Source: Cyanophora paradoxa CCMP329 (taxonomy: Eukaryota; Plantae; Glaucophyta). Taken from it: DNA of 64,000 nucleotides. The first letter of the stretch is position 1. Each line of letters starts with the position of its first letter. The stretch spans positions 1 through 64,000 of the forward strand of contig QPMI01000134.1 in the NCBI GenBank assembly GCA_004431415.1, in the 5' to 3' direction. A program made the translations under genes and the position numbers. Shown piece by piece: positions 23,722 to 51,807 of the stretch. Below the pieces are notes generated by a model. It had not been told where the DNA came from. It saw nothing but the letters and a program-made list of their open reading frames with translations, and did not search any database.

Positions 23722-26196
23722 CCTGGCAGCTGGCAGACCGAATTTCTCGGGTTGCCGACTACCAAACGCCGCTCAGACATGATAGCACATCTACACTGAT
23801 CTAAAAATGCTTCCTGAAACGCTTTCTACATGCTTTGCTGCCCCTATATGACGGGTCGAATTGACTTCCTCTCGGCCGGTCGCTGCAGAAGACGGGCGAT
23901 GCTCTCTGCTTCGCAGCTTCGCACAGCGACGCACCGATGAGCTCTTTGGCGGCGGATGCGTCCTGCCCGCTCGCTCTCAGCGTTGCTTCCCCTCCAAAAA
24001 ATGGCAGGGGGGGGTGTCGAGGGCGCCCAAGCACGCTCGGGGGGAGGGGAGAGGGGCGGGGCGAAGAAAGCTCGCACGGACCCGGCGCGGCATGCGGGCG
24101 GCCGCTGGAGGCCGGCGCAGCGCCCCGGGGAGCGGCGGGCGGGCCGGGGCGCGGGGCGCGGGGCGCGGGGCGCGGGGAGAGAGGCGGCGGCGCCGCTGGG
24201 ACGGCGGCGGCGGCGCGGGCCGATCGGCGGCGCAGCGGCCTCTGCCTCCGTCCCCCCCGCCGGGCCCGGCCCGACCCCCCCGCCCCGCCCGCCCCGCGTC
24301 AGTCCTCCTCCCGCGGCTGCGGGCGGGCGGGCGGTGAGCGCGGGGGCCGCGGCGGCCGGGCCGGTGTCGGGGCGCGCACCGCGGGCGGGCCGGCGGGCCT
24401 CGGGCTCCGCAGCGGCTACGGCCGGCGAGGTCGGCCGAGGGCCCTCGGGCGGGGCGGCGCGCGGCTCGGCCGGGGCCGCCGCGAGGCGCTCAGCGGCTCG
24501 CCGCCGCCGCCCCGCGCCGCCGCTCCTCCGCCAGCGCCCCGCCGGCTCCGGGGGCGCCGCCGGGGGCGCCCGGGGCCATCCATGGGGGTCGAGGGGGCGG
24601 GGGCGGCAGGCCGGCGGCCGCGGGCTCCGGCGGCGCTGCCGCAGTGCTCCCGGAGTCCGGGCTCGGCTCCGGCGGCGCCGGCGGCAGGAACCGGTCGAGG
24701 GGCCGGGGGCGGCGAGGCGGGCGGGGTCGGGGAGGGCGAGGGCGGCGCCGTCCGCGGGGCGATCGGCGGGGGACGAGGCGGGCGAGCGCGGCGCCGGCCG
24801 GCCGGCTCTCGCCGAGTCGGCTCCGGGCGCCGGCGGCCCCGAGGGCGGTCCTGCTTCGCCCTCCGCTTCCGCCGCCGCCGCTCCTCCGCCGCCCCCGCGC
24901 CCGCGCCGCCGCAGCTAGGACCGCCGTCCGATGCCTCCGCGCCGGAGAGCCTCGGCCCGTGTGGAGGTGCCCGGGACAGCTCCGCGCGCCCCCAGATGCG
25001 AAAATGCAGCGGCAACTAGAGAGGGCGCAGCGCAGCCCCGGAAGCGCGTTCCTGGCCGCTAGATACACATAGTATACGTAAAGATGTGCTTAATAAACAG
25101 CTATAAACGATGTGCCTGAGCCCCTGAAGTCGAGCACACACGGAACAGCTGAAAAAACAGCGAAAACGGGACGAATTCGGTATCAACATGGAGCGCGCAC
25201 CGCGAGGAAGAGGGCTAGGCTGCTCGCTGTAAGGGCTAGGGCTGCACGCGCTGCTCGCCCTTCGTAAAAAAGGTGGAGCTCGGGATCAGCCTCTGGTCTC
25301 AATTCTGACCGAAGGGAAGAAGAGACCAGAGGCTATACTGCCGACTTCGGATCCGTCACCATCGAGCAGTACCACACTTTCGAGGTTTTTGGGGTAGTAG
25401 GTATTAAGTGAATGAGTGTTAATGACTCTGGCGTAGATTGTGATTGGATGCCGGCCTGCGCTGTTTCAGCGGCTCCGTGGACCCCGAGTTTGAAACCTCC
25501 GTGGACTTCCTAGTGCCGAGATCACTACTCAAGGAGTCGTTCCGATTCCCGGCTCACGGTGCCTGAGTTTGACTTACAATGGTTGCGAAGAGATTCTGGG
25601 GGGGTACATTCTTTGTGGTAAGTTCCGCAATGGGGTCGTAGCGGACTTGGCAGGCATGTCGAGCTATAGCAGCTGCCGGCCCTTGGAGTCGATATCGGTA
25701 GCCCTGTTTGGGTTGAGCCTAGCTAGTGGTCTCTCTAGTGGAGACGCTCTGTTTCTGGGCGCCGGCGTACGTCTGCAGCCGTCACATACTTGGTCTGTTA
25801 TAGTATGCCATTTGTGTGCTGCCCGCACTGCCATATGCGCCGATTGGGTATCGAGCGGCCGAAAGTTGTCCGCCCTGCGCAGCGGTAGACGCTTAGGCCT
25901 GGGGCGGTCGTCGTTGCGCGTTTCCGGTGCGTTCATGTCCCGGCATATTGTCCGCGCTGGACGTGTGATGCTTATGCTCAAGCACTTCCCGTTAGTAAGT
26001 GCACTTCGCTGTCCGTCCTGCGCAGGAGCAGCGGCAGTTGCAGTCGAAGCTGACGGTCGGCGCTGGTTTGAGAGTTCCAATTGGATCGCTCCCCTGACCG
26101 TGCATCTCGTCCGTGTTGTTGGTGTGATGTCCGCCTCCTGCATCTTTCTGGGCTAAGCATCGTCCCGTTGGCCGCCCCGCGCAGATTAGTCTGCGG

Positions 26197-27282
26197 ATGC
26201 CAGCCGGGAAGAGGTCTAGATCCCAGTTGGAGCCGTGCCACGTACGTCTGCCTAGATTTGCTTCCACTGTCTTCGTGGGCATAATCTCGAATTTTTGCAG
26301 TTGACTGCATGCGTGTGCACGTCTGGACACGTAAGCGATCTCGTGGACTGGCTACGTCGCAGTCGAACAATCGTCGTGGACGGCGGCGCTGCGTGGCAAG
26401 ATTGGCATGCAACGATAGTATCGCTCCTCAAGTCTATGGGCCGCATAGCTCCTTCACGTCTCGCGAAAATCATGATGCAGCCAAGGCCTGTGTGCCCTGG
26501 AAAGGACGCGCTTCGTGACGTGGCATGGAAGGTGGAGGTGTTGCGGTTCTTGCTCGTCGTGGACGAGTCATCCATCGATGATTTAGTCAAAGGGGCGATC
26601 GAGCAGTACATCATATACGAGGATGAGTTGCACGATGCAGACTGTTCGTTCAGAGCACAGAACGGTGATGTGATTGGTTGCCCTGTCTCGGGTGCGTCGG
26701 TTCCTGCTCTCTACTTTTAGGCCTATCTATTGCTGGTTTTGACGCCGATGTAGCGCCGGATTGCACTCTGGCATCGATGGCCTCTCCTGGCAGGGGGATG
26801 ATGACTGCTGGAATCTTCGATCGTCTTCTTCAGCAGCTGAGCGTTTTCATGAATGTGTTCCCCAAGTCGAAGCAGATTGTACACGAGGATAGCTCTGGCC
26901 GAATGACGGCCTCTGAGAAGACTGATGCAGAACTTCTGATTGACTCTGCCACGGAGCTCTTTGTGAATGTTAGGAATTCCCTAGGCGTGCTAGGCTGGCA
27001 TCTTGTTCATCTTACCAACATCGTTGCTGGGCACATCAAGGAAAGGTGTGCAATGCGTGGACGTGTAACCTTAGCTTTTGTAGTATGCTCACTGTTTTGT
27101 AACGAGCAGGAAGGAGGATTTGGATACTATTCTTCGCCGTACAGCTGATCTTGAGGCTCAGGTGTGTGTGTCTTATACATATGTGCTCCATGATTATGGA
27201 CTGACTACCTTAGTGCATGCAGGCGTCGCTTCTCCGAAAGAAGCTTGAAGCGCTTGAGAAGCAAGCTTGTGCTGGTGAATAG
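26197..27282 (+). CDS. Helentron cargo gene, unknown function, 5 exons, C-terminal coiled-coil
   Basis: MPAGKRSRSQLEPCH|LTACVCT..QNGDVI|GLSIAGF..AGHIKE|RKEDLDTILRRTADLEAQ|ASLLRKKLEALEKQACAGE*, joined in frame by canonical GT-AG introns. Confidence 0.65.
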
Positions 27283-28781
27283 GACCGTCTTTATTGGCGG
27301 AGTGGTTGTGTAACAGTTATCACTCGGTGCAAGCTAGTGCTTTCTTTCTCATGTACGAACGGGCGCGTCGGCAGGCTGGGCGGTGTGCATGCCACAATCT
27401 CTAGTTCTAGAAATCAGGATGTACTGCTAGGTGGCACCATCATGATCTTTTGAAGAAGCTTAACGAGTCGATGCGCATAATACGTAAGTTTCTCCCTGCG
27501 CAGTCTTCTCATAAGATGTATATATATGTGCTATCACTGTCTGCATGCACGGGTATTCTCCCTTATGTAACTGAAGGCCTGGCGGTGCGAATGCGCATCT
27601 CACAATTTCTAGCCTTGATCACTGGAAGCAGCTTGATGGGCAGCATAAGCAAGCTTCTGCTGGCGGATAGTACTGATCGAATAGGTGCAGTCGTTGTATA
27701 ACAAGCATAACTGTCAGTATTGGAGGGATTCGGTGGTGTTTTGCAAGCAGTGTTAGTCTTCCTTCTATCCACGTAGCATAAATCAGGGCTGCGCTTTCGG
27801 TCATGATCATAATTGGGTTGCTGTTAGGGGTGTACAGGTTGCAGGAATGTGGCGCACGTCGCTTTAACTTGATCCACTCTGGTGGCTCTTTAGTACCTCG
27901 TTCCCGACACCAGCATCTGACATAGTAGCGTGCTTCTCGTTTGCTGCGCTGCGGTCAGGTGCATATCGGGTTTATGCCCGAGCGAGTGTACACACATGGA
28001 GGCCCGTGACACACTACGCTCTCCTGGTTGGAGCGTGCGCCGCTGCTTCCGATATGCTCGCCATGCTATCTTTACTGGCCAATTGCGCCACCACCTGCCG
28101 AGCTCGTCCTCGTGAGCCTGTTTTAGCGCGGCATGATCAGCGACTGTAGTGAGTTACAGGAGCGCCGCGCGCGAGGCGGAAGCGGCGTTCTAGGAATTCC
28201 GCGCGGGGGAGTCATTACCGGTACTGTCCATGGCACTGGCATCGTTTGAGTGCCACCCTGTACGGCGTATGCGCGCGGGTCACGCCTGCGGAAGCGTGCG
28301 CGGAAGTGTCTGCGCTGCAGCGCTCTATGCAGGCTTCGCACGCGTGTAGTGGATGTGTGCATTAGCTGGCGCGACGCCTGGCCTCTGCGTCTGTATGCGA
28401 GGGATGGATAGACATAACGTGTACCCGTACGCTGGTCCACCCCCCCCCCCCGTGCTGAACAGGTCCGCACGTCGGATCCGTCGAGTGGCATACGGCTGCA
28501 GTGATCGGGCGGGCTCACCTTCGCCTTCTGGTGTAGTGTCCGTGTCGAGTGATGCCTCCCAAGAGAAGGTGTGTAACCGTAGCGGTTTCAAGCTCATTAT
28601 GCAATGAGAGCTGATTGCCGATCCGTAGCTCGTCGGTCTCGAACGCGTCTGGACGCGAACCTGCCGGGTCTGGCCCTGCTGGGGGCCACGGTGGAACTGA
28701 CGAGCATGTTGACGTGTGTCTTTCCATGTGCCTCAGCGGCCTGCGGCTGGGTGTCTTTATTTCTGATGCACTTTGGACTAG

Positions 28782-29640
28782 GGAATTGAGAATGCGCGTG
28801 GAGTCCCAATTGCGAAGCGCGGAAGGGTGGAGCAAGCGCGGAAGAGGACGACCAGCCGGTCGCATACAGAACAGACAGTCCCAACGCCCAAGGATTGGCT
28901 AACGGTGAAAGCCGCCGGATTACGTTTGATCATGTGTTCTGAGCCTTGCGTTCTGATATGATACACGCAGGACGTTCACGTTGCCTGCACGACATCTGGT
29001 GCTCTCAAGTCCAAGAAGTACAATCACTTTCGTCAGCGTGTGATGCTCGTCTACCCGATGCACGAGCAGCTGTTCCTGCAGTCTCTACGCAGCATGAGCA
29101 CTCCAGAGAGAGCGGCGGACCTTATGTTGAATGGTGGTAGTGCTGTGTGCTTTTCGTGTCCTGTTACTACAGGGGACAACGTTGATCCCCGCGGATTTGG
29201 AGAGCATTTTTGCCTGATGTCCATAATGAAGGAGTTGAAGCAAATTCGCTGGTTCGATTCGAAAGGAGACGGTATGCCGGAAGAGCTTGATGTAGAGCTA
29301 CAGCGTCTTTTCCCAGATTATAGCTGCACTCTTGTAGTTCCACCTGGCTTCAAGCTGCAGACTGGAGTGATTAATTGCGCCGATTGGGTCTGTACGTGCT
29401 TTGAAGCTACGCTGGACGAGCTTGATAGTGGCATGAACTGGCCTGTTTGGCCTGCGGAAGTCGACTGGATTGCACTCGATATCTCAAACTCCAGCGTTGA
29501 GGAGATGACTAACGTTATGACGATATCAAAAACGAACCACACGTTCATCTCGCGCAAGCGCAAGACTTACATCGCTCTGATGGAGGCGCAACTGAGGAAT
29601 TCCAAGGACCAAGTTCCTGCGCTGGACTTTTCTGCATGTC
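28782..29640 (+). CDS. Helentron cargo: divergent Ulp1/SENP-like cysteine protease (gene ends uncertain)
   Basis: Splicing 28905-28970 yields PKDWLT|DVHV (the Ulp1 WLxD motif), then GEHFCL (His ~29205), IRWFDS (Asp ~29256) and LQTGVINCADWV (Gln, Cys ~29376). Confidence 0.75.
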
Positions 29641-31699
29641 CGCCCCGTTTATATCGATATATGCATACTGTCTTCCCACTCATTATCTGCTGGCCTCCTT
29701 GCGGCAGGTCTGATGCACTCCTCTATATTTCCGTCGGATTAAAATTACGCAAGCACAAGAGTTATGGCTGCGGCGAGTCCGTCCTGCATTTACGTGACAG
29801 TGATTATAGCCCAACATGATTTGTATTCTAGTAGGTGCTTTGATTCGAAGGCCAGTGCTGCGGTAGGCTGACCTCCGCCCAGTGTGAGTCGTGGCCCCAG
29901 CGGTGGACGCCCGCCGCCACTGATAGCTGGTGGCCAGCGTTAGCAGTGAGCTTCAAAGCCAGAAACTGCAACCTGCGTCCGTAGAGAGCACCAGGGTATG
30001 AAGGAGTCGATGTGCCACGGTGTTCTTCTTTAGAATGCCAGCGGCTCTCGCAGGACTTTGGCAGCTCAGCCCGGCGATGTACTGGTATAGTTCATCGAGA
30101 CTCGCCGCGGGCGCAGTGGTGGTGCACTGTCTGCAGCTTCTGTACTGCCAGTACTGGTGGATCAGACTCTGAGAGTGAGGGGCGCGTAGCGCAGAGCTTG
30201 GGCTGGGAGGCAGAGCGCAAAGTCACTTTTAATACGGAGAATTATAAGCACGCACTTCCGTTCGGATGGTTTCAGTCTCTAGGGTGGTGGTCGGTGAACC
30301 ACCTCCCGTCACTCTTTGATGCGGGGCGCGCCACACGCTGCGCGGGGGTAGTTCAGAAAGTGCGCGTTGATAGTTCTCATGTACGTTGTAGTGATGGTGT
30401 ACCGGAAGGTGCACCTTTCGTCGGTGAACAGCGAGGCACGCTGTCCGGCTGCCGATGATCCGCTGTCTGACTGTCGGGCATGCCTGAAGCGCCCGAAAGT
30501 GAGGTACTACGCCCGGATAGCGACGAGCCGAGCTGATCGGGGGGTGATGTGAGCTCATTGTTCTAGCTGTATTGCTAGCTTCCGTGCACGGGCGCACCTT
30601 CCACTGCGCATGGATTGTGTTGGACGCGCTCACATGGCGTGCTGTCTTCTTCCGCGCGTTGTGAGTGGGGGCGGACGTCGACTGCATCGCATGCGGAAGC
30701 GCCTGCGGAAGCGCCTGCGCTGCTGATCTAAGCAGGCTTCGCACGCTTGTAGTGGATATGTGCTTTAGCGGGCGAGACTCCTGGCTTTTGGTCATATTAC
30801 GCTGTACCCCTGTCGAACTGCATCCCTGCGCCAGTCGGACATCGCCGTCGGTCGATTGGCGCAGTGCATGTGGATGCTGAAATGGCTTGTACTTGTCTGA
30901 CTGAGTATGGCGTACAGTATGCGTGCCCCCAGATCGTGATGTTCGATTCGTGCGGCCGGATGGAATTGGTGTTGTCGTACCCCGGTACAAGATCGCCCCC
31001 GCGCCAGTCGGACGTCGACGGTGCTCGACTGGTGCGGTCACTGAGGTGGGCTAACGTTTTGTTTGCCTTCGGAGAGTGATCTTCAGCGCGGACGACTCTG
31101 CTGGAGTTTCAAGTGCACTGTACCCGTGTATGTGTTCATCCCGGTTACTGGTTGTATGTAGTACCCCACATGAGGGCAGCCGCATCTCGCGGCTGCTCGT
31201 CCTCAAGTGAGGATTTGCTTTTACGTTATTGGTTGTTCGAGTAACGCGCAGATTGAACGAAGGATGTGACCTGTCTGTGCTGCGTCGAGCGTGGTGCCTG
31301 TAACGGGTGCGTGTAGAGTTCTCCATTCCGCGCTTACTTCGATTGATTAGTTACTACCAGGCGATACGCGTGGACACGCCGCGTGGATGCGCACCGCTCG
31401 GCCACCTGGTGACCGCTGCCGTCTGCGTCGTGGCGGACGCATCGGTCCTCGGTCGCGGTCGCCGCTCCGATCGTGTAGGAGGCGTGGGGTGATGGCGGGA
31501 CTCGCTGTCTTCACCGGGTCCGTACCTTTCTCTCGAGATAGCTGGCTGAGTACTGTTCGAGCTGATGCACGATTGCGCTGTACGTGCAGATTGTACGGGT
31601 GAAGTAGCTGTCCACGTGACGTACCGGCGCTTGTCGCCTGGAGGCTGGTACGAGTCTTCGTATGTTGCAACCGCGCTTTCGTTCTTCCTGGTAACGCCG

Positions 31700-32880
31700 T
31701 CGTGCTGTAGAGATGCGATGGAGTGCGGATTGCATCCCCAGTGTATATCCTCCCTGCTCTGCCCGGCACTGCTCCGCCCTGCCCCGTCCCGTCCCGAGGT
31801 TGATCGGAGGATTCATGTGCAGATGAGCACCCGGTCTACGGTTGTGATTCAGGTCAGCCCGGGCGCTATGGGTGCAAGGATGATTGGCCAAGCCCCAGTG
31901 TGCGCCCCTACCCGGCTTTTCTGTGGCCCTGTCGCTCGTGTCTTATGCGCTGCTCTCGCGCGCCCTCCCGCCGTTGCCCGCCAGAGCTTCGTCTCCCCCC
32001 AAACCCATTCCCATGTCACCCGTATCAGCGTCGTGCTGCCCTAGTGCCCCGCCGCTATCTATGGCCCCACCCATGCCGTCCATCTCAGCGCCCCATCACC
32101 CTAGTGCTCTGTTGATCTCTCGTGCGCAGCTATTGCCGCGTGTCCAACCTGGGCATGCGAATGTTTCAGTGCCTGGTGCATCCCCTTGGTGATGCCCCTC
32201 CCCTGTCGCTGCTCTTCCGCCATAGAGTCACTGCTATATCCCTTTCGCTGCTCTTCCGCCATAGAGTCACTGCTATATCCTTAGCCCTCCAGCGGCCCTC
32301 TAGCTGGTTCGGAGTCGCGTTGGCCCCGTAGAGTTGCAGTGGAGTATGTACTGCATCTCCATGTCATAGCCGCCATGACCCGCCGCGCCCCGCCCCTCCC
32401 TTCCCTGCCCTGCTGCGCGGCTGATTGGAGGACTCATGTGCAGATGAGCGCCCGGTCTACGGTCGTGCTTCAGATCAGTGCGGGCGCCAGGGATGCGCGG
32501 ATGACCGGGTAAGCCCCACTGTGCGCCTCTACCCGGCTGTGCTGTGATTCTCTGGCTCGTCTCTTCTGCGCTGCTCCCACGCGCCCGTCGTCCGAAGCCC
32601 CCCATAGCTTTTACGCCCCTCAGAGCCTTTTCCACGTCACCCGTATCAGCGCCCCGCTGCCCTACTGTCCCGGCGTTATCTATCACCCCACCTCCGCCGT
32701 TCTTCTTAGCGCCCCATGACCGTAGTGCTTTGCTGATCTTTCGTGCGCAGTGGTCGCGGCGTGTCGACCTTGGGTATGCGCATGCCCCAGTGTCTGGCTC
32801 CTGCCCCAGGTGATGCCCTCTCGACCTAGAGTCACGGCTATATCCTTCGCCCTCCAGTGGGTCCCTAGCGGGGTCGAAGT
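31700..32880. repeat. Two degenerate tandem units of ~620 bp with an internal ~39-bp tandem duplication (32201-32280)
   Basis: GGAGGA(T/C)TCATGTGCAGATGAGC(A/G)CCCGGTCTACGGT at ~31806 and ~32427, with collinear downstream similarity. Confidence 0.85.
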
Positions 32881-33959
32881 CGCGCCCCCCCCCCTCCCCC
32901 CTCCCCCCCCCCCCCCCCTTCCCCTGCACCTCTCCCGATCCGCCCTCAGGCCCGATCAGATGGCGCCCTAGATCTGGAGTGTAGCGCCCTCCGAGCCCGA
33001 GCAGATACTGCCATAGCATTCCTAGATTTGGTTCTAGCGCTTTTAGACCGAGCCCGTTGTGCATGTACGTATTACTGTGTGTGTATAAAGTTGAAGTGGA
33101 TGTTTATGGTGCGCCGAGTGCTGGCCGTGGACGGGGATGCAGGGTCCAGATCTAGACATCGACGAAGCTATAGATATGAACGCGGATGCGCCTATTGTGC
33201 AGTTGTCGAGGTTGCCGCCTGTTGGGGGCGCCGCCGCTCTTGCTGTATATGTATTCTGGCCAAGTGCCACTGTGGGACTGAAGCGACGACGTACCCGGGC
33301 ACACTTGCCAGCTCTGTCAACGTCGCAGCTGCCCGTCCTCAACCACGTGCCGACGCGCACAGTGCGGCTGCACGACGACTCCTCGTCCTCAAGCTCGAAG
33401 TGAGGCTATCGGAGCTGGAAGCCGGCGCGGCCGGCTGCAATCTGCTTCACGCCTCGGTTGCCTCCTGCTTCTGGAGCACTCGCCGCCGAGTGAGCTCGTA
33501 GTGCATCATGGATGGACATGAACCAGGTAAGCGGTCGCGGTGGGTGCGGTGGCTGCCGTCGCTTATGGTCTGGTTGCCGCGCGTGGCGGCTAGTCATTAT
33601 TTGACACTATCAGCGTTCTCCCGGGGCTCACGTCGTGCTGCACTCTTCCACTACGCGTATTGATCAGTCGCCATGCTCGCGCGATCCCGCAGGACACAGC
33701 GCGGGTAGTTCTGGGTCCGGACATGTGGGCGCGGTAGGAAACGGCTCGTCTGGACCAGGTGCATGTGAAGGTGGTGCTGAGCGCCTCTTGTAAGATTGCA
33801 TCTTATCCTGAACTCGCGCCCGGGTCGCGCCGTTGTCGCAGGGGGTGCAGCTGGAGAGTTGCCTCTAGCAGGAGCCGTGGATCCGGATGTGACACCGGCA
33901 AATGGCAAGTTGTCTCTTTTTCGTCTGTCTGCCTTAATCTTCACCCACACTCGTACATA

Positions 33960-35100
33960 TCCTGTCTAGCCCGCCTTGGAAGGGCCGCCAGTGGGGCATA
34001 TCGAGCTTATCTCATGCTGAATTGGGTGCTTCTGCGGCTCAGTTGGGGATGGCGGGGCTGCTGGGCCTTCAGTCCTATCTTCAGCAGGCCCTGGGGTCGC
34101 AGATCAGACACCAGGCATGTTCCATTATTCGTACATCGCCTCTCTAGCCAGCCGCGGAAGGGCCGCGATCAGACTGGCAATGCCGCGATGCAATTGTGTG
34201 TATCGTGCTGATGGCATACTGAACTGGGTGCTTATGCGGCTCAGCTGTTGAGGGTGGAGGCCCTGGTGCTTCAGTCCTGCTGGCAGGAGTTTCTCTGGTC
34301 GCAGGTCCGTCACAAGGCATGTTTCCTTACTTGTACTGTTGGGCTCGCTGCCGGGTTCTGCCTCGCGAGTACCGCTATCGAATTCCCCTGTACCACTACC
34401 GTTCATCGGCCTATTCCACTGTCGCTTTCCCTGCAAAGCTTGAATTCCCTTCTGTATTAGTATCGTCCCCTCTTATGTCCAGCAGCGGCGGGCCCAGTAC
34501 ATGTCATTGCGCATCTTATGCTCCCTTCTCGTTTGCCTCCCTCTACGTTCGCGCACTAGTGCTCTCGCGAGTTTGCTGCCTATCATGAATGCACTAGTGC
34601 TCTTGCCGCCCTCTACGTTCGCGCACTAGGGCTCTTGCGCTGAAATGTGCCCTTCGTCCGCTCAGTCGGTGATGGTGGCGCGGCGGGTGCATCAGTCCTG
34701 CCCGAAGCAGTACCCACCATCCCAGTTGCGGCAGCAGGCACGTCCCCTGTTTTCAATGATGCTGCTCGTTGTCGTTCACTGCTGAATGGTTACCGGTGCC
34801 TTCTGCGCCTCTTTAATTATCGTTGCCGCTCTAGTGCTTAGATGAGTTACCTGCACGGTTTAAAATTCATCCCGTCTCGTTAATGTCCACTCCCCTCGTA
34901 GGTCTTATGTTGTGTACCAGTGCTCATTGCGACTTTTAGTACTCCGCGTTGTATCACCGGGCCGCCTCTTTAGCCTGCCCCGGAAGGGCCGTGTATAAAT
35001 TGGCCATGCCGCGACACATCGGTACATATTGTTTTCATGTCGTTCTAAACTGTGTTTCCCGGCCGCACAGTTGCTGGTGGAGGAGTTGCTGCTACATCAG
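33960..35100. repeat. Three degenerate copies of a ~200-bp module plus a short duplicated motif (34537-34640)
   Basis: TAGCC..C..GGAAGGGCCG at ~33967, ~34145 and ~34970; CTGAA.TGGGTGCTT.TGCGGCTCAG at ~34017 and ~34219. Confidence 0.7.
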
Positions 35101-35415
35101 CCCCGCCGTCAGGAGCCGCCGTGGTCCCAGATGAGCTGGCAGGTACGTTTACTTGCACTTTTTCTCGTGCGGCCCGTCGCTGTTCTCTGCTTCCCGGTGG
35201 TCTTTTTTCTAGTTATTACCCAACCGGTATTCGTTGTGCATTGACTATGGGTTTACCGCATACATTGCATGTTTTAAACTTATTCCCTGGCATTTCTCCC
35301 CCTTATTAGCTGCTTAGCGCCATTGCAGCCCCTTCGCCCCTGTCATTGCCCCCCCCTATTTTTAGGCGTTGCCGGCCCTTGGCCTGCGATTGAATTGAGT
35401 ACTGACCATACGCAG

Positions 35416-39500: not shown

Positions 39501-40354
39501 ATTTTTCGGATTCCATTCCCCTTTTGTCCGTGGTTGTTGTTTTGCAATGTAAACTTTGGCTGCTTGCTTGATGAACTTGTGCAGTGCACTGCACATGGAG
39601 TCACCTCTGCCTTCCTGCGTCTTCCTCTCGCATCGCATCGCAGTGCACTGCCGTTCTAGTGCCGCGTCGTTCTCCCGCTCTCCTCGCCAGTTCTGACATG
39701 GTACAAGCTGCACGAACCATGCACCAAGTGACCGGGTGCACGCCTCCTCCTACTTTCTTCTGGTTGTTGCCCCTGCTCCAGCTGCTGCGCTGTCGGCGTC
39801 AGCGCCAGCGGGCATCGCGCCCGACGCAGTCGTGCGCTCTTCTTGTCTTCCCCCGCCCCTCACCGGTGCCGACTGACCGCCCCAGGCGCCCCCGCCGGGC
39901 CACAGGAGGCGCGCGACTTGTTGCAGGTGCTCGAGTCGCGGTTCTCGCCCGTTGCAGCCCTCCCCTTCTCGTGGGGCGCCTGCCGTGAGTTCCGCCCCGC
40001 CCCCGCCTTTTTCCACCGGCCCCTGCGCGATTATTGTTTCGTTTCTGCCGCCATCCTTCTCAGCGCCCCGCCACCCCTCTCAGCGCCGCGCCGTCCGTCG
40101 CCCTAGTGTCCCGCCGCTTCCTCGTGCGCGGTACCTCCACTTTCAGTGCCCCGCCCCGCTCTCGTTCCGTCACCCTCCGCGTCCACCCCGCCCTCGCCCG
40201 CCCCCCAGCTGCCGATCGATAGATCCCATGTATGATAGGATGGGAGTACGTCTGCAATCTATGCTGTAAAATGGGCGTGTGATGATATTGTCATATTAGA
40301 CAAGGGTTCTCGTGGTGATGTAATTAGCTATGTAGTATGCATCGTGACTAACCT

Positions 40355-42033
40355 GCATGTTCTGGTTAGGCTGGCTTAACCGCAACAATTCTGGATTATA
40401 CTGGCCGTCGACCCCGTGATTCGTCGTGTGGGTTGAATTATTAAACGCCTTGACTCTGCGGGATGCGTTAATATTTAGTTCATATTATAAGGAGTGTATA
40501 GGATGTGCACTCACACGATCAAGGAATTGTCGACTATGCCGACTTCTGACGCGCACTGGGTGCCTGTAATGGCGGTGTCGTCTAGGTAAAATTGCACATC
40601 GTTCGTTCCGAGGTGGAAACGCTCGCGCGCTGTGCGGAACAGGTCTTCAAAAGGACGTGAGTAGTCGAGCCGAACGTTGACGATCTGGTTACTATGCTGT
40701 ATCCGGACTGTCACAGTAGGCTTCTTTTCAATATTCCGTAACCTATCTTAATGTCAGGTTCAATGGATCGACCGTTCGGGATATTGATGAACATGACATT
40801 ACGCACTCTATTATTTCATCTTCACGATATCCGACATCAGATGGACTCTCGTGCACTTCCAACCCGGTCCCTCCCAGTGTGAAGTGTGCCTTACTCGGAT
40901 CGACTTTGAAGAACTCGCATGCTTTTCCAAATGCATCTTGGAATGGTACCGTAGGGTCTGTGTATAATTTGAATATACCCTCGTCATTGAGGAAGTGTAC
41001 TGAAATCGCTATGTTCATGGCATCCTGTACGATCCCTGTCATATTACCAGTGTTCGGGTGAGTTTAAGTATCACGCACATGTACATGAACTGAGTCACGT
41101 GTCTCTCGTCGAACCGGATGCCAGTGTCCGTGCCAATCGACATGGACCTCACTCACGTCCGGATTCGGGCACTGCCCTACGTTTAGGAAACACCAACTTC
41201 GCCAGCACACTGACTTAATCGAACCCCGTTTAGGATCGATAAGAAGTGTTCGTCAAGTCGAAGTTTGTTAGGGTATGCGTATGCGTTGCATCCATAGATA
41301 GGGCATAACCTACGTGTATATCAGGTCTGAATTTCCAACAATTGCGGGGATGAACAGTTAATGTTGAGGCACCACACGCTCCGGTCGACCCATTTCTTGA
41401 TTCCTTGTCTGTAATGAGCCTCTGCACATCTCCGGATATGCGATTGTCCGTCAAAGCACTGCGAGTTTGATTATATAAGTGTACGCCCAACTATATGTAG
41501 TAAGTATTGATCACCTGAGTGTGATTACACGCCGCTGTTCTCATTGGCAGCTTGATGCGTCTCCGGGATATCGCGTCTTTCAAATCGAAGATGAGCCGTG
41601 AATCGCCATCCGTTGATGCATCGGCCGGCGAGAATTGGAACCGTTTCTGATGTTTGACCAGGCACTGATGTGTCTGCTTTCTGGTCGTGGTGATTTCGAA
41701 CTCTCTCGGGCTGGTTAGGTCTTCTCCTTCGTCTGAGCTCCAACACACCGGATACTTCCCGGTCCTTGCCTCCTCCATCGCTGTCATCATGAACGCATTC
41801 AGGTGTGTGCTAATCAACTGATCGCCATTTCGTATTTGCGTACCGTGACGTTGTCCAACGTGCCATGCAATGCAGTTGATGGTGTCGGCGGCGATTTCAA
41901 GTGCGATAGAACCGTCTCGTGCTTGGTGCAGAATATCAATGGACAACCGCCCCATCGATTGTGGGCAGGTCTTTCGCGCTGGTTGTCCAGCTTTGCCTCG
42001 CCATCCGTCTGAAGTCGACTTCGTACTTGACAT
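40355..42033 (-). CDS. Helentron cargo: Siz/PIAS-type SP-RING (zf-MIZ) SUMO E3 ligase-like protein fused to two SUMO-like (Rad60-SLD-type) domains
   Basis: LIFDLKDAISRRRIKLPMRTAACNHTQ|CFDG..VWCLNINC..SDLIY|..DEHFLSILN|QCPNPDVSEVHVDWHGHWHP| then SLD1 (IAISVHF..KLYTDPTVPFQDAFGKACEFFKVDPSKAHFTLGGTGLEVHESPSDVGYREDEIIE|) and SLD2 (VTVRIQ..VRLDYSRPFEDLFRTARERFHLGTNDVQFYLDDTAITGTQCASEVGIVDNSLIV). The model needs a 1-nt correction in a C-run (~41348) and one acceptor reads CG (~41259). Confidence 0.78.
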
Positions 42034-42961
42034 CTTCTTAGATCTGTGATCGATCGCCGAAGTCGCCAATTGCAAGAATACGGATGCTGTGTAAGTTCTC
42101 GCGCGCTCTATGTCGTTGGAATATCGTTAATACCAGCTAGTACCGCCGTACTATACGCGTACCCTGGATGATGTCATACCTCCTCTCCCTGCTAGTCAGC
42201 GCTTTTCACCGTGGCCATGGTTCTCTGATAGGCGGGGCGGGCAGGCTCGTTTGAAATTGACGTAGGTCGGGTCGCGGTGCGCACTATGCGTACCGCTATC
42301 CGAAGTAGAATTAGACGGTTATTCACGTCGATCGCTACGTGCAGCTACGTACGTCGATCTGTTCGCAGCTACGTATACGTACACAGATCTGTTCATTCAA
42401 TCGGTCATCCCGCTTTCGGGTGGTCAGTTCCGCTGGATCTGATGGATCCGGACCAACGTGTTTGCTGTCACTGTATGCCGTATCTTTTAATGTCTTTGTC
42501 ATTCTCGGTCAGTGGTGGCATTACTCACACTGCTACTTGCACGCGGTTCGCATGCTTGTTTGATGCTGACGTCTCGGTTTGCCGTCTATTTCTGAGACTT
42601 GTATCAGTCGTCATCAGCGTGGGACCTGGAGTGGGAAACCAACAGCTGCCGTAAAGAATGCGATTGAAGATTACATGCTCGATATGTACTCTACTCGCCG
42701 ATGGTGTGCTTGCTGCATGGGCTTGTGTCATGTGGCCGACATGTACAAGTAAATGTAGCAACTGCCTCCTGTGCCCAGTTCATGGCGACATCTGTAGTTC
42801 ACTCCCTTTATGGTTCCTCGTCCCACATGCCCGTCATCTATGATCACACGTGATGCAGCGCCCTGCTCTTCTCATCATATTCATATTTTCTTGATTGTGC
42901 TGATATGGTGTGATGGAAATAAAAACTAGATGTTGTTCTTTTGATAATCTGTTACATATCA

Positions 42962-43830
42962 CTATGGCGCTAGCCTCGTATGCCCGATAGACGTATTGCC
43001 GCGAACAGAACGGGTGGGAATGACCTCGCGCAAATCTCGAGTGAAGTGTGACCCTGGCAGAATGCGGAAATACTTGTGGGAGTTGCAGTCGTCCGATATC
43101 TCACATAGCACTGTCGACGATGTGGGCATTGCGATGATATCCCAGTCGTCTCCTTCTGACGTCTTGGGTTCGGGGAATATCAGACTGAAGCACTCCCACG
43201 TGCCACCATGCAGCGGTCGAACGACGCGGTACGTCATACCGGAGCTCCAGAGTACGAAGGCAGTACCGTTCTCCTGGAAAATAATTGAGCGATCTCCGCT
43301 GATAACCTCCAAGAAAATGCGCTCAGTGTCGCTTGTTATCGCGATTATTGCAATCGCCCCGTCGAAGACTGCTACGTGTGCTCCTGCACTGAATCGAGTC
43401 TCCAATTCTCCACGGTACTGTTGCAAGTCCGCATCGTGTCGAGCGCTCCACATGATACTGCCGGAGGAGTTGCGATGCCTGAACTCGCTTACTGTCATCT
43501 CAACGATATGCCCGTCCGGGAACGTGTGCGAATGCACGATTTCATCTTGGAGAATTCCGTCGGGCGAATGTGTCTGCGGCACTGTTGGTTTTTTCAAATC
43601 TCCACTGATTGAAGAGTGCTAGCGCGGCGAACCTCGGTTTCTGAGCGTTGCGCGATCGGTCTCTCTAACGTAGGGCGTGCCGACTGGGTCGATGGCGTCT
43701 CCGTAGCTTGCACTGACGTGGCTCGAGCCACTGACGATCGAGTGTCAATGCTTCGACTGCTCTCCGTCGGATGTGGTCCGGCTTCTACCACGCGTGGTCG
43801 CTTATGTGCATTCGCGGCCCTCTGCATTTG
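42962..43830 (-). CDS. Helentron cargo: hypothetical beta-rich protein (211-aa ORF, probably continuous with the upstream ORF across a frameshift at ~43597)
   Basis: Intronless ORF with globular composition in non-GC-biased sequence; no family recognised. Confidence 0.5.
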
Positions 43831-44959
43831 TATGCTCCTGCTGTACACCTCGACGTGCTGACCTGTTTTCGCTGGTTCGGAAATCACTGTACCCGTGTTC
43901 CTGTACGTTGCAGTGAGTACCAGAGTAGGTCCTTGAACCGACGGTTTTGGTCAGTTCTGTGCCAGTCGTATGCAATCAAGAGTGCGTGTTTCATGAAGTA
44001 GCGAGAATCGTATCGGTGCGTGCTTTCGTCTGATCTGTACGCCCCTTGTGGACTCATCCCTGTGCGCTCCGCTCTTCGCTTTCCCCAACCTAGATCGCTC
44101 CTTACCCGGTGCGCACGCAGGTGGCGGAGTAGAGATCTTGCTGTCGCTGCCAGTTCCGTCCGATAGCCGGTAGTTTCAGTCGCCATCTCGATCCCCGTGC
44201 GTGCAATATGCTACGTGCATTACCCTGCAAGTTCTAGTTGATATCGTATCACTTTCTCGCAGCACGCGCTACTGCATATTATATTCCGGGCTCTCTTCGA
44301 CATTCTTCGCTCGCGTATACACAATGTCGAATTGTCATGGCGGCGTACACTTTTTTTATCGCCCTCCTGATGTGGTGCGTGCTACTGAGTTCGCGATTTT
44401 TCCGAGTTCTCGCGTAAGGCGGTATTTCAGATTGAACTGCCCCCTTGGGGTGTTCCACCTTCAGCCGTATCGAGTCTTCTCAGTCACGTGTGTCTGCACT
44501 TGCGATCGTAAAGTTATTCTACTTATTAACTTCCTCTCTGATGGGTGATCGTATGTAGAGCGCTGCCAATCCTTGGAATGCATCAAGTATTCGCAGCTCT
44601 CAATTTCTTATTGCAACCCCTAGTGTACCTGGCGCCGTGAGCGACCAATTACTCATTTCCCATGGTACGACTGATATTCACTCGGTGTGTTTAGACCCCT
44701 ATTTTTACATCGGGTGCTTCCCGCGCTGCTTATCCACCTACAGTGCGTCTTCCTTGGTCTGTACTGTATTTCGACTGCCTCGTACTAATTTCGTGGCGCT
44801 CAGCTTCCAGTTTATCCCCCTATTTCTGCAAGTAATTACACTGCGGCACAAACGTCGTGGTGGCCGCATCTGTTGCCTTTGTCGGCCCTCATTCCAAATA
44901 CATCGGTATGTGTACGTGTGTACATTATTTCGCTAAATCTTTGTGATTGCATTTATTCG

Positions 44960-47900
44960 TGTAACCGGGTCGCAGTGTCCTTATCGCTGTGCAATTGTTC
45001 CCTCCTGCTCTGCGTCTTTCCTTACCGAGCGAGATTGGCGGGTGCACATGGCAGCTGCGCACGATACGACCCAGGATAATATATACCCGTGTGGGTATTG
45101 TAGTGCTGTGCTGTCCGATCGTTCCAGTTGGGACGCGCATCGTAGTTCTGTGCACCGCGTAGTAAGAGCCCGGGTTCGCAGGGAGCGCAGTACGTACATT
45201 GTTGTATTCCTTCCATCTGGGTCTGCGAATTTACCCTCACGTCGGTAATGCAGGTCCCACGTATTTTCCCCGACGACGTAGTCGTTTGAATCAGAACGCG
45301 AAGCAATGTATCCGAGATTCTGATGCAGGTACGTACTATATCATGCATGTATTGTGAAAGTACGTCAGTTTGGCACGTCTTAACAATTTCCAGCTCGGCA
45401 CGCAAATGATCCTAATTGGCCGTCATCGCATGCGAAGAGTAGAAATCGGAGTTATTACACCCAACGTACTCGTCTGTTGGAAAGGAACACGAATTTTGAA
45501 TCCGTACTCGAAAAGTGCGTTGTACGTTGCCTGCTCTTGTGCTTGCCTTCTTACGTTGCGTCAGTTATGAACCGGCGCAATTTTGGCATGATATTTCTGA
45601 TCCTGCCTTAAAGGAAGCAGCTAAAGTCTACTTCCTGAAGTTATTCTGCATCCGGCGGGGGTGCAGTTGTTGTACAGAATCAAGGCGGGCTGATAAACTG
45701 CATCCAGTGTCGTGCAAGTGTCTCTCGTCTAGGGACGGCGCCTCTACGATGCCACATCAAGCGGGCTGCTCGTGTATTACGACGGATGTGTGTTGTCATG
45801 CCTGCTCTGTCATGCGCATTCATGGAATATCCAGTGACCACGCTCGGGTGGAACTGTGCACCCGATGTAATTCCTTTAAATGCTCGCCGTCGCGGACATT
45901 CTGCCCCTTTTCAAGTCTGGTGCGATTTTGTACAACTGCGTTTATGCGTATCGGTTGATCATAGCTTGCTCATAGAATCGACTTCATTGCGTTGAAGTGG
46001 ACGAACGTATCCGGAACTTGCTGTCCGATCTGACGTACCCCGAGTTGTTAATGTGCCAAAGAGTGAATAACTATCAGGTGATTGCTCGCGCCCTTGTTAT
46101 TACGGTACCCTTTCGACATATCTGCCGTATGACGCTAGTACTCAGCTAATTCATGTACGAGGACCGAAGGGGAAGAATGGGCGGCGCATCGGTGGCGGGC
46201 AACTTGGATCGCAGGGCCGTGTTATATTCGTCCCTTGCAACCCTATTAATAATATCAAATCTATATTCCCGCTCCCACCGAGAGGCAAAGTGTGTCTGGT
46301 AAACCAACGGAAACCTAAAGGTGGCGAGACATGGTACAATCGTGTCAGGCTCGACAAATGCTTCGAGGTGCTGGAGTGCTTGCGCGATACCACGAAACAT
46401 ATCTACTATCAGAATATCCAGCTACGTGATCAGAACGACCCCGAATTGTTGGCTGAAATTGACAAGTGGAATGCCGGAACTACTGATAGTGTCATCAATC
46501 CACGTGACGCTGATGACTCGGACAGCGATACTTCCGACGTTGCTGCATCTGATTCTACGCCTATGAATCGTCCAATCTGTCCTTCAGTCGCCGTTAATTT
46601 GAAAGGGACTTCTCTCAGCACGCTCCCCGTGAATTCTGGCCGAATTATACGAGCCCATTCGCCGGAAACTGACGTGTGTTCGTTTCTGTCGGTATATCCT
46701 ACTGGTGTGTTTCCCGTCCGGGAATTGTACGCCTTTCAGCCGATCGAATTTGCGCAGGCACGCATGGCTTACACGATCCGGCGAGGCCTATATCGCTCAC
46801 CGCCCGCGAATTCTTCTCCCATCGATGCCTTGCGACATCTTCTGCGCCATTTCAGCGCGACCCGGCGGCCCTTCTGAACTCAATTTCCATCATATTGGAT
46901 GATGACGCATGGCGTGGTTTTAATTTTGTGAGGGATCATATTGTGAATGCAGCATCTCTTGAAAACCAGGATACGCATGGAGTGGTACCGAATGCTAATA
47001 TGACAGTTGCGGACGCCTTGAACCTGGTGAACAGTACAGTTGAGGATCACTCGCTTGATGCTTTAACCATACGTACAAGGTGCTACCGTACAATGACACG
47101 TAATGTGATTCCGATCCGAAATATTCATCCTCCCGCGCCTTCTGAAATTTCTCGCTCGTGCCCAGGTTCGAGGAACGGCTGCTTACTGGACAAATGCGCG
47201 AAATAAACTACACAGCATGTTCACGACCATTGGTTTCCCTCACATCTACATGACACTATCGAGCGATGACCTGCACTGGCCTGATCTACTTCGGGCAATC
47301 GACCCTGTCAAATTCCAGTCCAGCACCGCCGTATCGGAATTTACAAAAAATCGTGACGACGTTGTGAAACTGCTGAATGACAACCCGGGGATTGTTGCTG
47401 AGCACTTCGATGAACGAGTTCGCGCCATGTTGGAGTTGTTTCAGTCCGAAGGTGGCGAGAGCCTTTTTGGTTGGCCAGTCGTAGATTTTTTTGTTCGGTG
47501 CGCTTTGGAATTCATGTACGTGTATTTCGCGTTGTCTCATACGTCTCCGAAGGTATGAGGTTCAGAGTCGCGGGTCGTTGCATGCTCATCTAGTCATCTG
47601 GTTAGGTGAACGTACACGGGACGGAGTATCTACCCCTCCCCCCAATTTGGATCCGGCGGATCCCGCCTTCAATGCAGAACAAGTTTGTGCATGGCTGGAT
47701 ACGATCGTCAAAACGGAAGTGCGTTGTAGCTCATGTCATTGGAGTCGTGTTTGCAATCTACCTCTAATCTAGGCTACAGCAACCTCGCACTGAAGGCCCT
47801 TTTGCACAATCGTGGGCAACAGAGCGATTGCAGACATATGTTGCTCGGTTCAACCGGCACAAGCACTCGCATACTTGTCGGATTGATCCATCGGCGAAGT

Positions 47901-48920
47901 ACAGACACCGTCGCCAACGGAAACTGGCCGTCGTCGACGAGGACGCTGAGCTTCATGATCCTCTACCAGATACGGCCCGCAACTCCGTTCTCGAGGACCA
48001 GTTGTCTGCAATGGAGAAGGCTGCTCCTTCGGAACATGTAGCCCGTTCAGCCCGGATTGCGAGATTCATGGCCGAATACAAGGAGAGGTGTAAATGTCGA
48101 TTTGGGTTCCCCCATGTGTTTGCGGCAAAGACGCACCTTCGGAGTTCTCACGAGGAGCGCTTCATGTGTCGTGGGGACAGGGAAGTAATTTTTAAACGCA
48201 CCACACAAGACGACAGATACACGAACAACTTCCATGATATAATAATCCAGCTATGGCAAGCCAATATGGATATTCAAGTGGTCACTAACCCGTACAAGAT
48301 TGCAGCGTACATCTTGGGGTATATGACTAAAGATGAGACAGAGGAGATGAAGGCGGTTGAGAGCGTGCTGTCTGATTTGCCTGAGGAGGCTTCGACCAAC
48401 CAAATCCTCTTGAAGGTTCGGTTTCCTTTTACATGACCGGATTAATTGTGATTGGTTTGTAATCGCTGCGCCGCTCTCCTAGATGCGGAACGCAATGCTG
48501 GGATGTCGTACAATGTCCAAGCAAGAAGCGGGTCTATATTGCCTAGGTGGGTGCATTCGTTTTGTCGCCGGAGTTTGCGTGATGAATACGCACATGTGCC
48601 GCTGTGATCGTGCCTGCTCTCATGTATTCATGTGCATGCTGCAGGTCTACCATTGTTTTATTCATCACGAACATCCTGTTCAGTTGGGGCGTATCTTCCA
48701 GGGAAACGCACGAAGCACCTACGTAAGAAACGGGACCTCGAGTTCCGTGTGCAGCGCAATCCAAATGATGAAGATGCATGGGCGGATGATCAAGTTGATT
48801 ATTATACTGCTCGTACTAAGGACCCTGCTGGTACGACATTCACTTTCTCGTTCTCGACGTAAATAATCTGTGCGTATACGTGCAGGCTCGGCACCTGTTT
48901 TCGAGTCCCTAACATTATCT
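44960..48920 (+). CDS. Helitron/Helentron Rep (HUH/Y2 endonuclease) with two N-terminal C2H2 zinc fingers, spliced, truncated before the PIF1 helicase
   Basis: C..C..H..H x2 (44985-45155); LTYPELLM..GQLGSQGRVIFVP; VRGTAAYW; FPHIYMTLSSDDLHWPDL; NPGIVAEHFDERV; YEVQSRGSLHAHLVIW (HUH at 47581); HKHSHTC; CRFGFP; WQANMDIQ..AYILGYMTK (Y2). Possible frameshift near 46840. Confidence 0.93.
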
Positions 48921-51807
48921 TCCCTTTTACCCGAGCTCCATCCCTATATATATAACATTTTAATTGTTTCATTATCTTCCCTTTTACTTAATTTGTCAAT
49001 TCTTCGTACATCTCTATCACGCATTTGGTATACAAAACTTAATTTATACCCATCCTGCCGTAGTGCGTGTCCCCATTTCAGACCAGAGGCTGCACTGCCC
49101 CCGGGGCAGGACTGTTTTTTTCGACTGCTTCTCCAACACTCGCAGCGATCCCACGCGGCAGGGCTAGGAGGCAGCGAGCCGGGTACAGCAACCGCAGTTG
49201 CGACGCTGGGCTCACGCCATGCAAAGCAAAGTCAAGCGTGCAAATCATTTGCGAGCTCAGTGCGCAAACCACGGCACACGCACACTGCCAGAGCCTGCGC
49301 CATAGTACACATGAGTTCACAGCAATCAAACCGGCGATCGCAATTAACGGTCCGCGGATAGCCGGGGCTGCAAGGTCCTAGAGGCCGATCGCGATCGCGA
49401 CTCATGCATATGACGCAATTCTAATTAAATAATTCGATGTGCAAAACCGGATCGCCGAGTCATCTAATTCGAATGAATCATATATATAGGCAGTTTACTA
49501 TTAATTTAGCGCTAGCATCACGAGTTCTTAAAATCCGACGCATAATAATCGCACACGCTCGGCTAATATATCGCATGTGCATGTAAAATCGAATCGCCGC
49601 ATCAGATCATGATCATGATCATAATTATAAATAGCCTCCTGTCCCATTTAGAGCATTCTAGCTTTAAATCATTAATCGAATCTAAAGATCGCATGATCAT
49701 GATCGAAGTCAGTTCTCACGCGTGAATCACGGTATAGCTACTATGGCAAGGATCTGGACGGTCCAGACCCCGCTGTCGGAGCATCTTTGATGTAGCTACC
49801 GGGCATCACCGCTGAACCGTTGAACATGCCTGTGAAGCCCAGCTGCAGCCGGCCGTAGAGAGTCTGTCGAGCCTGAGCGTCCGGCTTGAGCCCTATAGCT
49901 AGTACGTAGCGCCCAACTGAAGCCCGTTCAAGCCCGAGTGTAGCTCTGCCCAGCTCAAGCTTGACGGCAAGTTAGCAGTACTACCGCCTGGCGTCAGCGG
50001 TTACAAGTTAGAGTCCAGACTTGAGCTCTAGCCAAGTCCAGTCTGCATCCAAGGCTCCGAGCTTGAGGCACTAGTACTGGCACACACAAGTCAGCGCTAG
50101 CGCATGAGTTGCGTGTCCCTTACAGTGACCGGCGTTAACGTTAGCAGCGTAGCATTAGTAGCTCAGCGGCTAGTCGTCTTCAGGCAGCGCGGCTCCGCTG
50201 GCCATGGGCTAGGGGCTGACGGGTACAGCTCCGTCCACGATGTGATCCGTCCGAGCGCTAGTTAAAGGGATGATCCGCTGAGGCATTAACATTGCTGCTT
50301 GAGCCAGGACGTAGACCGGGGCAGTTGCACGATCCACGAGAAGCCATAATTAATTATCGAATACACACTACACCCGCCGGCGCCGCCTCCACGCCCACGG
50401 GCCGCGCGCCGCCGGGGCGCACGCGCGGCGAGGGCGGCGCCCTGGGGCGGCGGGGCGGCGGAGGGGAGTGGCGGCGGGCGGCCGCGCGGCGCTGCGGGGC
50501 CCGAGCTGCGGGGCGGCCGCCGGGGCCCGGGGGAGCTTTCCGTGCTCCCGCAGGCGCCGGTGCAGAGGAGAGCGGACTCAGGGCGCGAGGGCCGCACGCA
50601 GAGGCCGGCCGCCGCCTCACAGCGGAGCGGCGCCCCGCGCCGGTCCGGCGCGCTGCCGCGCCGGCTCCGTCGCACTCGCGGCGGTTACTAACTGCAAACG
50701 GCCGTTAGGCTAACTGCCGCGCAGCGGAGGGGGCGGCGCTTCGGGGCTTCGGGGCGCACGCTGCTCCTCGCTGGCGACCGGCGCGGGGCGGCCTCCGCGC
50801 CGCGAACCGCGTCACGGGCAGTGCCGAGCCGTGCTCCACGGGCTTCGTGCTCCGCGCCCCACTCGCGGCGACTCCGCCCTTCGCCCGCCAGTCCATTCAA
50901 TCGCGGCGCGGCCATCCGGGGCGACCTGCCGCGGGCGTGCGTCAGCTTCGACTTCGCCGCATGCAAATGCACGACGCTGTGCGAACCAATGCCCTCCGCC
51001 AAGGCCGCCGCCGCCGCGCCTCCGCCGAGCTCGCGACGACCGCGAGCGGCCATTGCGGCGCTTCCGAGGGAGGCTGATCGTGCTCCAGATGCGTGGAGGA
51101 GCGCATTCTGCTGGCCAGCTGCTCGCCCGCACGCTGTGGAGCGAGATCTCGTCACGATTTCTGTGCCGGCTTGGGGTACAGCGATCGCCCGCTTCGCCAC
51201 CTTCGCTCCTCGGGCTTCGATGCGCCTTGCGGCGCGGCGCCGGTATACGTGCGTTCCAACTCTATCGACGGCATGTGCTGGTCTAACACGCGCCGCTCGC
51301 AGCCTTGCGATCTTGTGCGACTCGGCAATGCGGTCGATTGCAGGGATCAGCGCGCGCGCAGGCGCGCGGCTCGATGCGAGTGCGATGCGATCCCGGCGGC
51401 GAGCGGATCCAGGTACGCCGCTCGGCCGCGCACGGACGCGCCTAGGCCTATCCTGCGCGAGTCGCAGGGGGCGCGCGCGCGGACGATGCGGTCCTGCGGG
51501 GCCTCTGCCCGAGCCTGCCGCCTCGGCTCCGGACGAGGCGGCCGGCGTCGCGCCCGGGCGCACGCCGACAGACGTCCGCCTCGAGCGCCGCCCCGCGGGC
51601 CCCTCGGACCCGCCGGTCGCCCCGCGCGAGAGGCGCCCCCGCAGCGCCGCGCGCCGCGCCTCCGCGCGCCCCTCGAGCTCGGCGGCGGGCGGCGGCGACT
51701 CCTCCTCCTCCCTCCCCGCGCGCCCCGCCCCGCCCCGCCCCCGCAGCTTGGCTTACTGAGTCTTTGGCCTTGGCTCTCTGGCTGTTTGCTCTCCGCCCCG
51801 GCTCGCC

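Follow-up and report, generated by a model that had tools for sequence, protein, structure and literature searches.

Does a rolling-circle transposon of a glaucophyte alga carry genes with which it could edit the SUMO signalling of its host? The question is raised by an element at positions 25287–49114 of a 64,000-nt stretch of Cyanophora paradoxa CCMP329 (assembly GCA_004431415.1, contig QPMI01000134.1, positions 1 to 64,000, forward strand; hereafter the window). A first-pass annotation, made from the sequence alone, had described it as a giant Helentron with three SUMO-pathway modules, namely an E3 ligase, SUMO mimics and a Ulp1-type protease, that would form a dedicated anti-silencing or replication-support system. 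Our analysis confirmed that the element is real and that its ends are of the Helitron2 type. Its combination of an SP-RING gene with two SUMO-like domains (SLDs) and a protease gene is a real, unusual cargo variant of Helitron2-type (HLE2) elements (Table 1).

The element stands out by base composition: its GC content is 53%, as against 73% and 70% in the two flanks. Its 5′ end is formed by a repeat of 12–13 nt, 25287–25299, that pairs with 25323–25335 as a hairpin (z = −6.5), and an inverted copy of the repeat lies at 49080–49092, 22 nt from the 3′ end and directly before a GC hairpin that, taken alone, is not significant (z −1.4). Three copies of the 12-nt end motif are present in the window (25288 on the minus strand, 25323 and 49080), where chance alone would give 0.32. 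In Helitron2 elements the asymmetric inverted repeats measure 8–15 bp, the 5′ copy being terminal and hairpin-forming and the 3′ copy lying 20–30 bp inside the end and directly preceding a hairpin; insertion is between T and T, without target duplication (PMC3627910). Both ends follow this layout of Bao and Jurka (PMC3627910) in repeat size, hairpins and 3′ spacing. The target site has one T on the left and T7 on the right, so that it can also be read as insertion between A and T, and insertion between T and T is unproven.

The surroundings of the element gave an independent view of the insertion. They are a diverged copy of the repeat unit 7006–9824, a paralogous unit within the window that lacks the whole segment 24960–50372 and has an empty site at 7723–7757. 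The missing segment starts with TG, finishes with CA, is accompanied by a CCCG duplication and measures 1,585 bp once the element is subtracted; it is probably a solo long terminal repeat (LTR) that was later interrupted by the element.

A search of all frames of the element brought up no apurinic/apyrimidinic (AP) endonuclease, neither a Walker A motif nor a coherent Pif1 helicase motif set was found in its six frames, and Rfam gave no match. Because the strict definition of a Helentron needs an AP endonuclease domain (PMC11417382), the element was classed as HLE2 but not as a strict Helentron; since neither helicase nor endonuclease was found, this copy was regarded as non-autonomous and unable to move alone. 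The termini announced by the first-pass annotation were thus borne out, as Helitron2-type termini, but the name Helentron was not.

As the first-pass annotation had proposed, the SP-RING gene was compared with RNA-type contigs. All seven of its GT–AG joints on the minus strand were recovered there, in contigs of two studies (run type guessed, depth 2–6), and none in the DNA run; spliced joints that are absent from DNA are good evidence that the gene is transcribed. Removal of the seven introns yields a single open frame of 441 aa comprising the SP-RING, a Siz-like tail and two SUMO-like domains. Here and below, searches took the spliced models one exon at a time, and joined models were translated to check frame and motifs. 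The gene had been placed at 40355–42033; its spliced SP-RING and two SUMO-like domains stood, whereas its true end proved to be 40296 and an in-frame intron (41781–41843) had been overlooked. Because the presumed SUMO mimics are spliced into the same chain as the ligase, they are ligase domains rather than a third module, and the three modules reduce to two genes.

For the first part of the SP-RING, zf-MIZ matched half of the domain at E 4.4e-4 (below the cut-off) and zf-Nse matched at E 0.021; the full SP-RING motif occurred in 0/20,000 shuffles. The zinc-ligand pattern is present, with C148, H150, C183 and C188 as the probable ligands and an Asp where the first Cys would be expected; the zinc ligands seem to be retained, as do the E2-facing Ile and the Siz-like tail. 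Judged by eye, the HxQCFD and WxCP motifs are Siz/PIAS-like, as is the acidic segment behind them that ends in Trp, and the CPxxGC spacing is Nse2-like. The SP-CTD-like segment gave no hidden Markov model (HMM) match, and the N-terminal 125 aa matched no substrate-binding domain. No homologue of the first SP-RING frame was found in a search confined to proteins of 95–302 aa, which a 441-aa relative would escape, and one DNA run held no sister or donor of the gene at 80% identity or above.

The two SUMO-like domains are 27% identical to each other, and the C-terminal di-glycine is absent from both. In the Atlas, domain 1 lies near Rad60-SLD and ubiquitin clusters (0.91). Domain 2 weakly matches Rad60-SLD (E 0.033), as well as SLD2 of NFATC2IP/NIP45 (E 0.06, 64 residues ungapped) and SUMO2 (E 0.29), and the conserved Asp of FxFDG has an Asp counterpart in it. 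Taken singly the scores are weak; the three methods agree on a putative SUMO-like identity for both domains.

The second gene had been announced as a Ulp1/SENP-like protease with all catalytic motifs, and these are indeed in place: W73, H154, D171, Q205 and C211 follow in Ulp1 order and spacing, including the upstream WLxD. The span first given (28782–29640) does contain an open reading frame, which is part of a wider gene of five exons (28552–29742), a predicted structure derived from GT–AG sites and from gene models of the sisters rather than from RNA. Among shuffled sequences the strict motif pattern occurred in 0/20,000 and a loose one in 13/20,000. In the Atlas, two Peptidase_C48 clusters rank first (0.95, with 187 shared features, and 0.94), followed by a Nucleocytoviricota cluster in the third row (0.93). 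P0003 and the rows of one PDB search were set aside as chance matches. The strong domain matches that the first-pass annotation led one to expect did not appear for either gene, with zf-MIZ (E 4e-4) below its cut-off, Rad60-SLD at E 0.03 and no Peptidase_C48 match for the protease in Pfam or PDB. On its sequence the gene product is a divergent CE-clan protease, with SUMO, NEDD8 and ubiquitin as candidate targets.

Close relatives of it are EukProt proteins of Cyanophora paradoxa, which assigns the window to this glaucophyte, and the homologue search returned Cyanophora sisters only. The Nucleocytoviricota row is the one pointer to a viral origin, because no relatives of the protease were found in viral contigs and none of the Rep gene (described below) in metagenome contigs. 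At least eight sister records on at least six contigs, near-identical among themselves, form a young multi-copy family. Compared with these sisters, the core is 88% identical, the C-terminal part 77% and the N-terminal tail 69% (core vs. tail, p = 0.005); the greater conservation of the core points to purifying selection. In one sister model on another contig (P0004), 224 aa of TPR-like sequence precede the protease; they find no counterpart in the window.

Both genes, with open frames, thus lie inside one bracketed HLE2 element, as the first-pass annotation had it. GC at third codon positions (GC3) is 0.55–0.58 in the two genes, compared to 0.95 in the flanking leucine-rich repeat (LRR) gene, and ranges from 0.50 to 0.61 across all cargo genes, matching the element and not the flanking host gene; for this reason no cargo gene was taken to be a recent capture. 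A recent capture of GC-rich host genes, akin to one of the findings that were named beforehand as overturning the proposal, was rejected on this codon GC together with the missing close donor of the SP-RING gene at 80% identity. The claim of a dedicated system rather than random capture fared less evenly: the genes are not recent host captures, but the presence of unrelated orphan genes fits a variable cargo pool equally well. The protease is multi-copy in Cyanophora, the SP-RING gene has no sister in the DNA run at the identity given above, and the neighbouring gene at 43 kb has a sister of about 86% identity. The missing SP-RING sister and the TPR-like front on one protease sister indicate that cargo differs between relatives. 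The two genes were not seen to travel or act together, and a toolkit, plausible as it is, falls short of proof.

Table 1. Features of the element and its insertion site (window coordinates)
Feature	Position	Strand	Basis or remark
Non-autonomous HLE2 (Helitron2-type) element	25287–49114	+	23,828 bp, 53% GC
5′ asymmetric inverted repeat and 5′ hairpin	25287–25335	+	13-bp stem; definition in PMC3627910
3′ asymmetric inverted repeat (49080–49092), GC hairpin (49095–49109) and end	49080–49114	+	then T7
Solo-LTR-like insert, left part	24960–25286	.	1,585-bp TG...CA, CCCG target duplication, interrupted by element
Solo-LTR-like insert, right part	49115–50372	.	same 1,585-bp insert
Ulp1/SENP-like (CE clan) protease gene	28552–29742	+	308 aa, 5 exons
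Protease exons	28552–28568, 28629–28713, 28782–28904, 28971–29637, 29708–29742	+	GT–AG sites and sister gene models
Protease catalytic codons	His 29205, Asp 29256, Gln 29358, Cys 29376	+	motif order
SP-RING and tandem SUMO-like-domain gene	40296–42033	-	441 aa, 8 exons, seven RNA-type joints
SP-RING gene introns	41781–41843, 41459–41514, 41310–41372, 41172–41224, 41025–41078, 40743–40806, 40456–40514	-	all joints in RNA-type contigs
SP-RING domain (aa 130–208)	41225–41583	-	three exons; zf-MIZ / zf-Nse partial matches, motif shuffles
Siz/PIAS SP-CTD-like segment after RING	41079–41171	-	by eye
SUMO-like domain 1, no C-terminal di-glycine	40809–41015	-	Atlas clusters 0.91, 27% identity to domain 2
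SUMO-like domain 2, nearest NFATC2IP/NIP45 SLD2, no di-glycine	40517–40730	-	Rad60-SLD, NFATC2IP, SUMO2 matches
HLE2 Rep (HUH) gene	44324–48915	+	17 introns, C2H2 fingers, open frame through 3′ end
Spliced orphan cargo gene	42965–43871	-	sister copy about 86% identical, no family match
Large intron-rich orphan gene(s)	35049–39379	+	no family match, limits approximate
Probable further orphan exons	26256–27698	+	no family match, limits approximate

The Rep gene matched Helitron_like_N (E 1.9e-14) and zf-C2H2 and carries HUH and catalytic Tyr motifs; DUF6570-like motifs were seen by eye only, with no HMM match on single exons. Five of its introns, at the 5′ side, were seen in RNA-type contigs and the remaining 12 were predicted. 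Near 46700, 47110 and 47770 the frame seems to shift, but GT–AG introns of 53–61 nt restore it, and the frameshifts were dismissed. The model stays open for 1,241 codons to the element end and continues into the flank; Rep-like sequence ends near 48915 and is followed by AT-rich DNA. In the DNA run, Rep is single-copy with zero differences, and more distant sisters are present at about one-fold and four-fold depth; a homologue search with a piece of Rep found none. Two Rep sister contigs (46022–46082 and 45048–45703) both stop at the equivalent of ~50290–50300, ~1.2 kb past the end of this copy. If a true terminus, this stop would hardly leave space for a helicase and would hint that the family encodes Rep alone or that the helicase has a gene of its own; it may equally be a graph branch.

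Among the remaining cargo, the orphan gene at 42965–43871 and its sister gave a dN/dS of about 0.36 (p = 0.004), values which, on this two-copy comparison, show past purifying selection. Head to head with the SP-RING gene lies a spliced transcript, 42162–42913 (+), with an intron near 42546–42607 and no convincing frame; it is probably non-coding and is transcribed at least as deeply as the SP-RING gene. Internal duplications were noted at 31707–32884 (621-bp period, about 75%), at 37218–37600 (257-bp period) and upstream of the protease gene (28283–28387 / 30688–30790, 100 bp at 83%), and a short motif is common to 32014, 32635 and 40049–40096. Outside the element, a GC-rich unit of ~9.4 kb forms a tandem pair (97%) within 1–15350, with a third copy after the element at 50373–58300 (86–89%). 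Arrays of 69-bp units encoding leucine-rich repeats lie at 58973–59622 and 18108–18515, in two related genes.

Our preferred reading, which we hold tentatively and rate a little below an even chance, is that of a non-autonomous Helitron2-type element with long-resident accessory genes, in which the fusion acts as a self-contained SUMO E3 and the protease is kept separately. Observed at this locus were the ends, the gene structures, the splicing of the E3-like gene and the pattern of conservation in the protease; what the proteins do, with which partners and on which substrates, and how the element would gain from it, is inferred in what follows. The helicase would have been lost or never present, and the accessory genes would have been drawn from a variable cargo pool. 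The SP-RING would dock the host Ubc9~SUMO, the Siz-like tail would hold the donor SUMO, and SUMO-like domain 2 would sit on the backside of Ubc9 as a one-chain equivalent of Esc2/Rad60/NIP45, which act in trans for Mms21/Nse2. The fusion was read as a self-contained E3 because it resembles the Nse2–Esc2 pair in one chain; in yeast, Nse2, itself an SP-RING ligase, is stimulated by SLD2 of Esc2, which binds to the backside of Ubc9 (PMC13645794, PMC7849368). The protease would act as an isopeptidase of the CE clan on a ubiquitin-like modifier, SUMO being the likeliest. The two genes may each have been retained for shifting SUMO marks on element chromatin or rolling-circle intermediates to the benefit of the element, and ligase and protease need not be a fixed pair.

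Several observations weigh against a self-contained ligase with a separately kept protease. SLD2 of Esc2 does not stimulate Siz1 (PMC13645794), so that the cis-cofactor model is not general. Every HMM and PDB score for the SUMO-related domains is below curated cut-offs; the SUMO-like fold was not confirmed by structure predictions from one or two sequences, whose quality was too low, and the structure model of the protease was unusable (pLDDT 31). Profile search detected neither SAP nor PINIT in the N-terminal exons, leaving the ligase with no recognised substrate-targeting domain. Its RNA depth is only 2–6, in runs whose RNA type is a guess, and no sister that could show selection on it was found. 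In addition, every one of the sister protease models is interrupted ahead of the catalytic His, at differing places, a pattern that either assembly error or decay may have produced.

The two genes could instead be passengers that were captured long ago, are carried along or slowly decaying in a copy unable to move, are transcribed leakily and do nothing for the element. The single copy with its missing helicase would suit this explanation, as would the low transcript depth, at least equalled by the probably non-coding neighbour, the broken sister protease models and the many sequences that Helitrons capture (PMC6431247). Yet the genes are whole, multi-exon and open, full-gene capture has been called exceptionally rare (PMC6431247), and the conserved protease core together with the dN/dS of the neighbouring cargo gene speaks for past purifying selection; we consider mere passengers distinctly unlikely. 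Slightly more improbable still is a decoy, in which the fusion would be a dominant-negative trap for Ubc9 or for silencing factors bearing SUMO-interacting motifs, lowering host SUMOylation as the protease would. Two inhibitors would be easier to explain than a ligase and a protease with opposing outputs, and both the missing di-glycines and the unmatched N-terminal 125 aa agree with a trap, which nevertheless would not need the zinc ligands, E2-facing Ile and Siz-like tail that appear to be kept.

More might also be claimed than separately kept genes. A co-inherited writer and eraser pair in giant Cyanophora Helitrons, stripping repressive SUMO and writing permissive SUMO on Rep or repair factors, would account for two genes of one pathway, both with open frames, in one element. 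The genes are, however, 10.5 kb apart with orphans between them, the protease has many young sisters and the SP-RING gene none at 80%, and the TPR-like front found on one protease sister is absent here, so that cargo differs between copies; we judge such a pair unlikely. That giant Cyanophora rolling-circle elements have repeatedly built a SUMO-editing kit, with a one-chain Mms21/Siz–Esc2/NIP45-like E3 and a SUMO protease rewriting host marks, appears somewhat less improbable, yet doubtful.

Several known systems share features with this element. Asymmetric inverted repeats, 5′ and 3′ hairpins, a T-rich target, an HUH Rep and Peptidase_C48 cargo are shared with Helitron2/HLE2 elements as portrayed in the available text (PMC3627910, PMC11417382), whereas this copy has no helicase or endonuclease and its cargo consists of whole spliced genes. 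According to the main text of HELIANO, the domains stably carried by Helitrons include Peptidase_C48, OTU, UCH and F-box-associated ones; it mentions neither SP-RING nor SUMO-like domains (PMC11417382). Ulp1 domains are thus known cargo of Helitrons (PMC11417382), and also of Mutator-like elements (MULEs; PMC13317346), among which KAONASHI/VANDAL elements carry a conserved Ulp1-type domain of unknown function that has been tied to anti-silencing (PMC13317346). These too are DNA transposons with a Ulp1-type domain, but theirs is fused to VANC in a cut-and-paste element (PMC13317346), whereas here the protease gene stands alone, in an element that also has an E3-like gene and in which nothing resembling VANC was recognised. 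The planarian giant Gypsy element Burro likewise encodes a Rad60-type SUMO-like domain (PF11976); unlike the present element, it is an LTR retrotransposon with a polyprotein, and the available text mentions neither SP-RING nor Ulp1 (PMC6431247).

Among host proteins, Mms21/Nse2 with Esc2/Rad60/NIP45 offers the same pairing of an SP-RING ligase with a tandem SUMO-like cofactor whose domain 2 lies on the Ubc9 backside (PMC13645794, PMC7849368). Those are separate host proteins, whereas one transposon-borne chain is predicted here, with no recognised Smc5-binding arm. To the eye, the SP-RING with its HxQCFD and WxCP motifs and the SP-CTD-like segment behind it resemble Siz/PIAS ligases, from which the fusion differs in that no SAP or PINIT was detected, the first Cys is an Asp and two SUMO-like domains are appended. 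A literature search of incomplete coverage, mostly without subscription journals, found no SP-RING/zf-MIZ gene or SUMO ligase on a transposon and no natural SP-RING–SLD fusion; one on Cyanophora Helitrons, also incomplete in coverage, found none.

SUMO proteases on transposons are known and their role is unexplained (PMC13317346). A transposon that also bears an expressed ligase-like gene would make it possible to ask directly whether such elements edit the SUMO signalling of their hosts. As a natural one-chain version of Nse2–Esc2, the fusion of an SP-RING with tandem SUMO-like domains could moreover test the Ubc9-backside cofactor model, regardless of its role in the element.

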